Shown here: piece by piece, positions 25,055 to 62,811 of the stretch
Layout: the number at the start of each line of letters is the position of its first letter
Position numbering within the stretch: the stretch's first letter is position 1
Assembly (NCBI GenBank): GCA_964247055.1
Contig: OZ176058.1
Coordinates: forward strand, 2,418,001 to 2,482,000
Reading direction: 5' to 3'
Source of the DNA: Paragordius varius
Lineage: Eukaryota > Animalia > Nematomorpha
Length of the DNA: 64,000 nt
Notes under the pieces: generated by a model
Told to the model about the DNA's origin: nothing
The model's input: the letters and a program-made list of their open reading frames with translations, nothing else
Databases searched by the model: none
Translations under genes and position numbers: made by a program

Positions 25055-25100
25055 TTAATCTGAAGTTAGTTGAGTATCTGATTTTGTCAAAATCTTTAAT
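25055..25100 (-). CDS. TMEM30A: CDC50 probable terminal exon ([15 protein letters not shown])
   Basis: Phase-2 acceptor gctaatttAG fits the exon 6 donor; read-through to stop at 25173 is an alternative. Confidence 0.65.
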
Positions 25101-60600: not shown

Positions 60601-62811
60601 ATTGTTTTGGCGGTTGCGAAATAAGTAATTGAGATGTAATATAGTTGTATTTAATTATAAATGTGTTTAATTTTGAAAAAACGTAAAAAAATAGTTTTAA
60701 ATCGATAAATATGAATTTTTTAAAAAATTATTAATATTAGAGTTTATAACTTTCTACAGCGTTTTTTTATATATTATTAAATTATTGTTAGTTAATATAT
60801 ACCATTTACAATTTAAATTTACCCTAAATAAGTTTTGTGGCCAACTAATATAACTCATCTTTATTAATATGATATATATTTTTATGGCATAGCTTATTAT
60901 TAATTTTAGACAAAATTTCATTTTTAAAAAATATAGGTAGGGTAGGTAGGTAGATAATTTGTAAGGGTAAATTTGATTTGTTTGAGGGTAAATTCGAATT
61001 ATAAATGTGTTTTACATTTTGTAATTTCGTCGTTTTCTATTACAGTATTAGTAATTAAACTATTGGTAGTTTTTTTTTATTTTTAATATTAAGTTAAAAA
61101 AGCGTAAAAAGATAGTTTTAAACCATAATATAGTAAAAATCGAAATTATACCGACACAAAACATTAAAATATAAAGACAAATATTTTTTTTTCTAAAAAG
61201 TTATTTTTTTTATAAATTTTATTTGGAAATAACTTATTGTTTTAAACTGCATAGTATAAAATACATATTATATGATTGTTTTTAAAATAATTTTAATAGG
61301 ATAAATATAAAGGCTAGAAAAAGTATGGTTGTCTTTTAGTAAAATAAATTTTTCTTTATATTTTTACAACGTTTTGTCCGTATAATTCCAATTTTTATTA
61401 TTATCTGGATATATTTAATTAAAAAGAGTCAATAATATATAAAAGGAAAAAAAATTAAATTTTCCAAATTTTTTATATCAAAAATATTTTTTATAAATTA
61501 TATTTATTTTCAAATTAACTTAAAAACTTTATTAATTTAATAGAAAAACTAGCAGATATATAATTAATTATAATATATTTATTGAGATATTTTGTTTATA
61601 TCGAAAAAATAAAATTAAAATATATTTTTTTTAAATTTTACAAATATGTTTCTAAAATATATTGATTTTAATTATAAAATTTTTGATTTAAAAAAACTTC
61701 AAAACTATATTATTTATCGATTAAGTAATTTTTAATAAGGCTTTGATATCCTAAATTTTAAATTAAATTAAAAATATGAAATTAAAATATTAAATAAATT
61801 TATTTAAATTATAAATATTATCATTTTTAAAGCTGTTTTTATTGTATAAAATATTAAAATTTTAAAAAAATTATTTTATTTATTTTTAATTTAATAATTT
61901 TAGTGTAATGCCCCACCAAATCATATAAAGCTTAATATTACACGAGATAATATGTTTGAGGATAGCTTTCAACAGGTAATTTTTATTTTTTATAAAAAAA
62001 AATTTTTTTTAAAAATAATTTTTTTATAAAATAATTTTTAATATTAATATATTTTTTTCCAAATCTCTCTATATAAGTTTTATACTATAAAAATTTAGTT
62101 TAGTTATATTTTAATTAATAAATAGAAAATAGAAAATTTTATGTAGATATATTATATTTTTATTTTATTTTTTTTTTGTTATTAAAAAAAATATCAAAAT
62201 TAAAATAAATTAATATATTTATTAAAATAAATAATATTTCTTTATTTATTCATTATAATTTTTTAATAAATAAGGTATTGCCAATTAATTTAAAAAATAT
62301 TAAATTATATAAATTTCCAACTATTGTATTATTATTATTATTTTTAAAATAAACTATTATATCATTGTTTTTAATGAAAATAATTTTAATTTAATAATTT
62401 ATTAAAATTTTTATTTATTAATAATTTAGTTTATTCTATAAACTGATAAATTTAATTATTATATTATATAAAAAAAATTTATTTAATTTTAATTATAATC
62501 TTAATTATATAAATATTATAATAGATTCTTATATAAAATAATTATACAATAGTTTTATATATATATATATATATATATTAATTTTTTACTATCAAATTTT
62601 AAATTAGTTTAGTGCTATTTTCTTGAAAAAATAATTTAATTTTAAATTTAATAATTATATTTATTAGATTTTATTTTAAGTTAAATAATTTTTATAATTT
62701 TTTTTATATGAATCTAATTTAGGTTATGCAATGCAGTGCACAAGATTTAAGACGTCGCTTATATTTAAATATTAAAGGAGAGGATGGACTTGATTATGGC
62801 GGTGTGGCTAG
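42274..62811 (+). CDS. WWP1: NEDD4-family HECT E3 ubiquitin ligase, WWP1/WWP2/ITCH/Su(dx) class (C2, 4 WW, start of HECT); partial at both ends
   Basis: join 42274-42628, 43710-43834, 46036-46170, 46946-47087, 49115-49282, 51035-51251, 55497-55566, 56156-56240, 57544-57738, 60093-60168, 61904-61975, 62723-62811 (1729 nt), all GT-AG and phase-consistent; [24 protein letters not shown] and DLRRRL...[12 protein letters not shown] are diagnostic; exact paralog cannot be resolved. Confidence 0.93.
42872..43430 (+). repeat. Three echoes of the acceptor and 5' part of exon 43710
   Basis: tttAG-cttagtcacgttatacagtaa (~42878), -...cttctgtttaaagttatggacc (~43078), -tttagtaaccccgtatagtaaa...gttatggatcgtaagatt (43359). 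Confidence 0.9.
43710..43834 (+). CDS. WWP1: E3 ligase exon (C2: [15 protein letters not shown]...[12 protein letters not shown])
   Basis: Aligns to ITCH-type VTP.SKL.F.V....LG...D; phase 2-1. Confidence 0.9.
44213..44875 (+). repeat. Three echoes of the 3' end of exon 43710-43834
   Basis: ttttatc.cct.cttatgcttt.tg motif at ~44220, ~44495, ~44833; two end in 'caaa(a)gtatatt'. Confidence 0.9.
45128..45745 (+). repeat. Four echoes of the acceptor and 5' part of exon 46036
   Basis: AG-ttgaaaatgt.cat-like starts at ~45137, ~45380, ~45532, ~45703; two carry aaaagttgattt. Confidence 0.8.
46036..46170 (+). CDS. WWP1: E3 ligase exon (C2 end: [10 protein letters not shown]...GNLYITLN)
   Basis: TTTAG acceptor, A|GTATT donor, phase 1-1. 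Confidence 0.85.
46946..47087 (+). CDS. WWP1: E3 ligase exon (Asn-rich linker to SPLPPG)
   Basis: Open frame ending PLPPG immediately before WW1; phase 1-2. Confidence 0.85.
47765..48950 (+). repeat. Six copies of 'cctgaaatgttggtcgcttataatac/cccgctctattggaa', probably a decayed WW1 exon echo
   Basis: GTC GCT TAT AAT ACT CGC TCT...TTGGAA vs exon GTG GAT CAT AAT ACG CGG ACC...TGGGAA; a ~480-bp higher-order duplication is also present. Confidence 0.55.
49115..49282 (+). CDS. WWP1: E3 ligase exon (WW1 and start of WW2)
   Basis: [26 protein letters not shown]...LPAGWEA. Confidence 0.95.
50066..50297. mobile_element. Family-1 MITE (degenerate)
   Basis: TA|ccatttacaaaaattcaccc ... gaatttgaagtgttaatgg|TA. 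Confidence 0.7.
51035..51251 (+). CDS. WWP1: E3 ligase exon (WW2 and N/S/T linker)
   Basis: [23 protein letters not shown]...TAFSILNE|GT. Confidence 0.95.
51355..54910 (+). repeat. Array of ~15 units (~230 bp), each with the 3' half of exon 51035-51251 plus donor
   Basis: Repeated 'ttaaatacgacg...aaattctacc..aatctattaactgctttttccatcttgaatgag|gt'; higher-order ~590-bp duplication 52975-53560/53560-54150. Confidence 0.95.
55497..55566 (+). CDS. WWP1: E3 ligase exon ([10 protein letters not shown])
   Basis: Conserved DPLGPLP.GW before WW3; phase 0-1. Confidence 0.92.
55600..55850. repeat. Short AT-rich tandem repeat (~40 bp, ~6 copies)
   Basis: attaaaatttagtgaattaattttatt unit. Confidence 0.75.
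56156..56240 (+). CDS. WWP1: E3 ligase exon (WW3)
   Basis: [29 protein letters not shown]; phase 1-2. Confidence 0.95.
56790..57350 (+). repeat. Three echoes of the acceptor and 5' part of WW4 exon 57544
   Basis: ttagaaacaaattcttct..aggggttagtggcagttataaccccctaccccaaggct at ~57056 and ~57291; a shorter one at ~56800. Confidence 0.95.
57544..57738 (+). CDS. WWP1: E3 ligase exon (WW4)
   Basis: [32 protein letters not shown]; phase 2-2. Confidence 0.95.
57875..59475 (+). repeat. About eight echoes of the 3' part and donor of WW4 exon
   Basis: tctacaac.tttgatgacc...gctggaaaaa.tgttttaag|gtt repeated, with decay generally greater in distal copies. Confidence 0.9.
59665..59925. mobile_element. 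Family-2 MITE (TA|CAGT...ACTG|TA, Tc1/mariner-like)
   Basis: TIR cagtaaaaattggaattatacgg.acaaaacg; related copies or arms at ~600-680, ~6115-6405, ~13880-13950, ~29090-29375, ~61131-61397. Confidence 0.8.
60093..60168 (+). CDS. WWP1: E3 ligase exon ([17 protein letters not shown])
   Basis: Diagnostic pre-HECT motif; CAG|GTATT donor. Confidence 0.95.
60802..61007. mobile_element. Family-1 MITE (degenerate)
   Basis: ccatttacaatttaaatttaccc ... gggtaaattcgaattataaatg. Confidence 0.65.
61904..61975 (+). CDS. WWP1: E3 ligase exon ([24 protein letters not shown])
   Basis: 72-nt phase 0-0 exon at the HECT N-terminus. Confidence 0.95.
62723..62811 (+). CDS. WWP1: E3 ligase exon (VMQ...DLRRRL...[12 protein letters not shown])
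   Basis: HECT hallmark GLDYGG; within ORF 62726-62935. Confidence 0.95.

Follow-up and report, generated by a model that had tools for sequence, protein, structure and literature searches.

Arrays of repeats that span exon-intron boundaries have been described in amphioxus under the name of 'mirages'. In the globin genes BflGb6 and BflGb9 they affect both 5' and 3' boundaries, are made of units of 150-160 bp with 81-100% identity, undergo concerted evolution within clusters and leave splicing normal (PMC3087553); the same study deems their mechanism unclear, suggests that the phenomenon may be general in cephalochordates, and cites a description of the Adh3 gene (Canestro et al. 2002) as the original report. 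Mirages have also been found in the amphioxus genes PGBD5 and troponin C (PMC3902484), and they have been proposed to be neutral by-products that are able to feed intron evolution (PMC3087553, PMC3902484). In humans, the variable number tandem repeat (VNTR) of F7 intron 7 is built from a 37-bp repeat and lies with its first element across the donor of exon 7, and its identical pseudo-donors are functional yet silent, the 5'-most donor being selected in mammalian cells (PMC1557585). Internal tandem duplication starting from exonic AGGT has further been implicated in the creation of introns (PMC3265369, published in 2011), including in a potato RdRp gene (PMC4974935) and in Drosophila (PMC2891723). 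The present study concerns a 64,000-nt stretch of the genome of the nematomorph Paragordius varius (assembly GCA_964247055.1, contig OZ176058.1, positions 2,418,001 to 2,482,000), hereafter the window, in which the introns of two unrelated genes, one of the CDC50/TMEM30 type and one encoding a NEDD4-family ligase, carry arrays of partial copies of the neighboring exon edge, hereafter echoes. With a probability of roughly 0.8, we regard these arrays as mirage-type intronic minisatellites that arose from tandem duplications spanning splice sites, grew by unequal exchange, and are decaying neutrally, with a bias in where they were seeded or retained.

Arrays were located using Tandem Repeats Finder (TRF) and self-BLAST, and had periods of 128-428 bp with 1-15 extra copies. 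Each testable splice boundary was then represented by a 60-nt junction probe (40 nt of exon and 20 nt of intron) that was aligned to the adjacent intron with GC-weighted scoring. The remaining introns, read on both strands, provided the controls, whose maxima ranged from 18.5 to 27.5. Junction-spanning echoes were present at 10 of 32 testable boundaries, with scores of 33-70 against a control maximum of at most 27.5, and the units at these ten boundaries contain 28-128 nt of exon plus the AG or GT. The donors of exons C3 and C5 of the CDC50 gene are two further, weaker boundaries at which the splice site is repeated together with no more than 16 nt of exon. Five arrays lie on the acceptor side and five to seven on the donor side, and three exons of the ligase gene (E2, E3, and E9) have echoes on both sides. 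All echoes are confined to the adjacent intron, on the correct side and in sense orientation, the maximum score in wrong-side and antisense scans being 22, and the junction probes match no other intron, neither the other gene nor the flanks. Junction-anchored arrays make up 14,964 of the 27,492 nt of intron (54%). The observation of the arrays is thus real, and it confirms much of a preliminary description of the window, which had reported consistently polarized echoes on both strands (the CDC50 gene is on the minus strand and the ligase on the plus strand) that enlarge the introns by several kb. That description had placed echoes at about 14 of ~36 boundaries, a figure that the ten robust and two minimal-exon boundaries do not reach; the four CDC50 boundaries that it named (exon 2 donor, exon 3 acceptor and donor, exon 5 donor) were all recovered, and of the ten that it assigned to the ligase eight were found.

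The GC content of the window is ~24%, falling to 11-14% in some intron stretches. The two genes are divergently oriented and occupy its 25-63 kb portion (Table 1). Exons C2-C7 of the CDC50 gene form an uninterrupted frame of 360 residues up to the stop codon, with GT-AG at every intron, and exons C3 and C5 match Pfam PF03381; a search for homologous proteins with the exon 2 peptide returned distant fragments only (at most 47% identity). The model starts at C2, exon 1 lying upstream and not having been located, as was also the case for the first exon of the ligase. In the rebuilt ligase model, all introns are GT-AG and the reading frame is clean; WW domain matches were obtained in E5, E6, and E9, and E12 matches the start of the HECT domain in WWP2, ITCH, and WWP1. 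An Rfam scan of the window yielded no match.

Table 1. Genes, exons, and junction echoes in the window. Copies are those counted with the junction probe; the last column gives the span detected by TRF and self-BLAST, with the period in parentheses.
Feature	Position	Strand	Copies	Content	Repeat span (period)
CDC50/TMEM30-type gene	25055-34822	minus		spliced open reading frame without interruption, GT-AG introns	
CDC50 exons C2-C7	34551-34822, 30544-30745, 27845-27976, 26920-27186, 25219-25384, 25055-25100	minus		stop codon in C7	
NEDD4-family (WWP/Itch-type) C2-4xWW-HECT ligase	42274-62811	plus		runs past the window end	
Ligase exons E1-E6	42274-42628, 43710-43834, 46036-46170, 46946-47087, 49115-49282, 51035-51251	plus			
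Ligase exons E7-E12	55497-55566, 56156-56240, 57544-57738, 60093-60168, 61904-61975, 62723-62811	plus			
C2 donor array	31586-34550	minus	9	last 98 nt of exon 2 + GT + ~215 nt of intron	31586-34652 (~317 bp)
C3 acceptor echo	30862-31027	minus	1	intron end + AG + first 56 nt of exon 3	
C3 donor-intron array (probable)	29498-30324	minus		~6 units of 115-139 bp, from the intron start	29498-30324 (~138 bp)
C5 donor array	25886-26919	minus		~8 units of ~128 bp, donor ATG/GTATGT in each	25886-26928 (~128 bp)
E2 acceptor echoes	42791-43709	plus	3	up to 53 nt of exon, AG in 3/3	
E2 donor echoes	43835-45060	plus	3	~42 nt of exon, period ~270-340 bp	
E3 acceptor echoes	45125-46035	plus	3	23-38 nt of exon	
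E3 donor echo	46380-46473	plus	1	38 nt of exon	
E4 acceptor echo	46630-46751	plus	1	~30-65 nt of exon, AG gone	
E6 donor array	51252-55000	plus	15	last 128 nt of the WW2-linker exon + GT + ~105 nt of intron	51123-55000 (~233 bp)
E9 acceptor echoes (WW4 exon)	56754-57543	plus	3	59-74 nt of exon	
E9 donor echoes	57739-59574	plus	6-7	up to 88 nt of exon, 7-9 copies overall	57653-59574 (~227 bp)

The largest arrays carry a record of how they were built. In the C2 donor array (period 298-332 bp), the joint AAG/GTAGGA is retained in all nine echoes, and a higher-order repeat is evident in that identity at offsets of 630 and 1568 bp exceeds identity at an offset of one unit; its second and seventh echoes, and likewise its third and ninth, have private indels in common. 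The E6 donor array (period 210-266 bp) holds two adjoining copies of a 589-bp segment (52967-53557 and 53556-54146) with 99.3% identity, which reflect a higher-order duplication of very recent date or else a false duplication introduced locally by the assembly. The nested repeats of the two arrays point to growth by unequal exchange. In both arrays one exon-side breakpoint is common to the echoes and the unit joints that were examined are sharp; given this single shared breakpoint, we infer one seeding event for each large, well-aligned array. Inspection of the unit joints for microhomology revealed none that was convincing at these aged breakpoints. The echo closest to the live exon is the most or second most similar to it in most arrays; at the E9 donor, the nearest echo is 90% identical to the live copy. 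The minimal-exon arrays are less clear-cut: the C3 donor array has up to 16 nt of exon with the joint CTATG/GTAAT kept, is separated from the live donor by a spacer of ~170 nt, and is a probable though not robust junction echo, and the C5 donor array, with at most 10 nt of exon, gave a marginal probe score, its units having been recognized by eye.

We propose that each affected junction would have been seeded by a tandem duplication of 130-430 bp that reached from within the exon into the intron, the product being one whole exon and one truncated copy with a spare splice site. Such a two-copy seed would then have expanded by unequal exchange or slippage to as many as 15 units, including higher-order repeats, and the copies, leaving with the spliced intron, would decay neutrally. 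Splicing would use only the site on the whole exon, that is, the 5'-most donor or the acceptor beside the full exon. A descent from local tandem duplications across splice sites had been put forward in the preliminary description, and the junction-anchored arrays support it. The consistent polarity of the echoes, to which that description gave weight, is a geometric necessity rather than a separate finding, because a tandem duplication that crosses a splice site can leave only copies of the exon 3' part, GT, and intron start downstream of a donor, or of the intron end, AG, and exon 5' part upstream of an acceptor, and it requires no further process. The remaining component of the proposed history is a bias in seeding or retention, by which arrays would be restricted to genes and would occur at junctions about twice as often as under uniform seeding.

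This bias was quantified on 17 intronic arrays from one fixed pipeline, whose class as spanning or non-spanning was set by the author. The unit spans a junction in 11 of the 17. Under a naive null, in which a seed of unit length is placed uniformly on the present-day genes, 2.4 spanning arrays are expected (p~5e-7); this null is unfair, since array growth has itself enlarged the intron target more than 2-fold. When each array was reduced to one unit, leaving 12.1 kb of intron and 2.8 kb of exon, the expectation rose to 5.5 of 17 (p=0.006), an excess of about 2-fold. The six non-spanning arrays are also close to junctions, at distances of 0-34 nt and in one case 220 nt, nearer than under uniform placement (Fisher p=0.003), with BLAST edges that are uncertain by 10-20 nt. 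Simulated four-copy arrays of deep-intron composition (15.5% GC) were detected as often as junction units at all divergences tried (at 64% pairwise identity, 35 of 40 pure-intron and 36 of 42 junction arrays, with 0 of 40 false positives), and detection bias is therefore excluded as the source of the junction excess. The 32.5 kb of non-genic DNA in the window held no array of this class, against 25-37 expected at the genic density (p<1e-9). The junction excess is thus real but moderate, and the restriction to genes is strong. The preliminary description had proposed both a process concentrated at junctions and a comparison with random placement; run on this window, the comparison places spanning arrays above expectation, and the concentrated process is moderately supported.

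A segment of 5.2-6.6 kb is tandemly triplicated at 7653-11846, 14292-18550, and 18545-22209, with 84-86% identity among copies, in apparently non-genic, transposon-rich DNA. Its age is comparable to that of the arrays, and it follows that tandem duplication has also occurred outside genes, at a far larger unit size.

Both a mutational cause and differential survival of DNA beside exons are compatible with the junction excess, and the data do not separate them. A stronger version of the mutational cause holds that duplication targeted to genes and junctions, through breaks or template switches at exon-intron borders, has been the chief force behind the growth of introns in this genome, such that introns were built from their own exon edges and strewn with thousands of decoy sites; we consider this possible but doubtful. 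Candidate processes are break repair coupled to transcription or splicing, possibly by way of R-loops, and recombination anchored in exons that act as 'homology islands' between very divergent haplotypes while their AT-rich introns misalign. Targeting of this kind would account for the excess over random placement, the proximity of even the non-spanning arrays to junctions, the absence of arrays outside genes, and the involvement of both sides of E2, E3, and E9. It would also account for E9 acceptor echoes with differing breakpoints and an identity gradient from the live exon, and for the single C3 acceptor echo, whose exon differences are synonymous only, as expected for a copy of another functional allele. 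However, the excess is only ~2-fold under the fair null, a single seeding event suffices for most arrays, and no microhomology or other motif was recovered at the aged breakpoints.

Somewhat less probable is that seeding was uniform and random, that duplications which broke exons were purged, and that the apparent anchoring reflects small numbers, the classification, or the longer survival of exon-side DNA, where a deletion would damage the exon as well. A third of random seeds would span a junction on the collapsed introns, the p value rises to 0.022 when the C5 donor array is left uncounted, and a 'deletion shadow' on the exon side could yield up to ~2-fold, which equals the observed effect. 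Uniform seeding does not, however, explain why arrays are missing from non-genic DNA that has kept segmental copies of similar age, nor why the non-spanning arrays also crowd towards junctions, and the simulation leaves it no recourse to detection bias.

A function under selection is unlikely. The arrays might serve as U1-binding donors that shield long introns rich in poly(A) signals against premature cleavage, as splice decoys or regulators, or as reserve exon ends, and in favor of this the donor arrays are bigger than the acceptor arrays (median 7 vs 3 copies, p=0.028; 9, 8, 6, 3, 1, 15, and 7 copies per donor array and 1, 3, 3, 1, and 3 per acceptor array), GT is retained in 28 of 31 donor echoes (C2, 9/9; E6, 14/15; E9, 5/7), and the sense strand of the introns contains 8.7 poly(A) hexamers per kb. 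Yet the asymmetry equally fits tolerance, spare donors downstream being harmless where spare acceptors upstream would compete with the live site, and the acceptor echoes are left unexplained by such a function. The retention of GT, and that of AG in ~8 of 11 acceptor echoes, is in line with the overall identity of 80-90%. The decoy splice sites anticipated in the preliminary description do exist. Copies are 63-90% alike across arrays, each with its own indels, and their exon-derived parts are conserved no better than their intron-derived parts: in full-unit alignments, echo-echo identity in exon- and intron-derived parts was 0.859/0.866 at C2, 0.788/0.730 at E6, and 0.633/0.626 at E9. An apparently better conservation of the exon-derived parts was a product of coordinate-extended alignments and vanished in the full-unit ones. 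Substitutions in the exon-derived parts fell on the three codon positions at 76:96:120, 16 changes created stop codons, and there were several frameshifts; stops and frameshifts are common, which speaks against a selected function. The synonymous share was 33%, compared to 21.5% under uniform mutation, and since constraint on the live exon lineage alone predicts ~36% (a hand estimate), this mild excess needs no selection on the echoes. Telescripting, with donor echoes as U1 sites, was rejected, having found no support except the size asymmetry. As to the poly(A) hexamers themselves, AATAAA and ATTAAA together occur 238 times in sense and 373 times in antisense in the introns (25101-62722), a sense-strand deficit for which T-rich skew could be a sufficient explanation.

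An assembly artefact, through falsely expanded repeats or merged haplotypes, is very improbable, for although the 589-bp duplicate could be a false duplication, copies that are only 63-90% alike are not assembler artefacts (differences of 10-37% with private indels being beyond what an assembler invents), the pattern recurs at 10-12 junctions on both strands, and contigs from two samples contain 92-95% of the 31-mers sampled from 57500-59000. In two relatives, the 31-mers of the same stretch were found at 8-10%, roughly its exon share.

Some observations sit uneasily with a history of single seeding, neutral decay, and biased placement. At the E9 acceptor, the three echoes break off within the exon at points ~15 nt apart, which could indicate repeated independent events instead of one seed, and identity to the live exon drops with distance from it (87, 82, and 80%); together, the spread of breakpoints and the similarity of the nearest echo hint at repeated exchange, or repeated events, with the live copy. 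The C3 acceptor echo is an outlier, its 88% identity to the live copy and 4/4 synonymous exon differences standing slightly above simple decay. The collapsed-null p value ranges from 0.0013 to 0.022 according to the class given to two borderline arrays, with n=17. Weighing these points, we retain the reading of the arrays as neutrally decaying mirage-type minisatellites, and we lean towards a bias stemming from break-and-repair linked to transcription or exon homology, rather than from selection for the arrays.

Other repeats lie among and around the arrays. A 428-bp-period array at 47641-49093 stops 22 nt short of the E5 acceptor and contains a repeated, GC-richer motif (CCTGAAATGTTGGTCGCTTATAATCCCCGCTCTATTGGAAC) that matches neither the exons of either gene nor Rfam. 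An array at 50278-51043, considered as an echo of the E6 acceptor on account of a 9-nt exon overlap in BLAST, was unsupported by the junction probe and was classed as non-spanning. A 21-bp satellite (consensus ~AATTGTTCAAGGGTGAATTTG) forms short arrays at 716-1352, 28670-29054, and 63389-63898 and occurs as single units near 27200-27240, 30780-30800, 35330-35400, and 60930-61000; one inverted pair is in CDC50 intron 3, and single units immediately precede the C3 and C5 acceptors. The satellite probably belongs to a dispersed element. Between the two genes, the region 36379-42092 contains inverted repeats (36615-37133/38853-39372, 94%; 39376-39753/41486-41862, 91%) and a reverse-transcriptase-like ORF (open reading frame) fragment at 37693-37818. 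Their position between the divergently oriented genes suggests a nested transposon, and a related copy is found at 50-468.

If the density seen in these two genes (one junction in three and half the intron length) were genome-wide, the introns of this species would have grown largely through copies of their own borders, and this would be a concrete, datable route of intron expansion, separate from transposon insertion. The combination of a moderate junction bias and a strong gene bias makes the site of tandem duplication directly testable. The arrays also constitute a large natural experiment on splice-site choice, with dozens of near-identical donors and acceptors whose distance from the authentic site is known. 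Our literature search found no genome-wide quantification of junction-spanning repeat arrays.

Among the described systems, an origin from introners or transposons is not supported, as the junction probes have no dispersed match in the flanks, in other introns, or in the other gene. Nor is the creation of introns from exonic AGGT (Rogers; Gao & Lynch), every array extending an ordinary GT-AG intron between complete exons, with no exon split by its own duplicate. The cases of intron creation do share with the present arrays a local genic tandem duplication that copies splice signals and a duplicated stretch that becomes intronic; the difference is that a new intron was made there, whereas existing introns were lengthened here. 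The F7 VNTR resembles the donor arrays in having an authentic donor followed by identical copies, and by analogy it may serve as a model for the sole use of the 5'-most copy, although it is confined to one locus, has a short unit, and lacks acceptor-side arrays, and donor scanning was shown in mammalian cells. The closest likeness is to the mirages of amphioxus, and the suggestion in the preliminary description that the systematic pattern was undescribed was too strong, its kind having already been named in that literature (PMC3087553). In both lineages, units that span an exon-intron boundary with the AG or GT are arranged head to tail, the array terminates in the real junction, both 5' and 3' boundaries are hit, and turnover occurs within clusters, as seen here in the higher-order repeats of C2 and the 589-bp duplicate of E6. 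Judged on their sequence, the arrays possess all structural hallmarks of mirages, which would extend the phenomenon to a second, unrelated lineage. The mirages of amphioxus have been demonstrated by experiment to splice normally and to vary in length. The units differ in size (10-160 bp there, 128-428 bp here), and the arrays here reach 15 copies. The host genomes differ too, the GC content of amphioxus being ~41% and that of the present host ~24%. What is new here is the lineage and the density of the arrays, with one in three junctions affected across two unrelated genes and half of their intron length made up of array.

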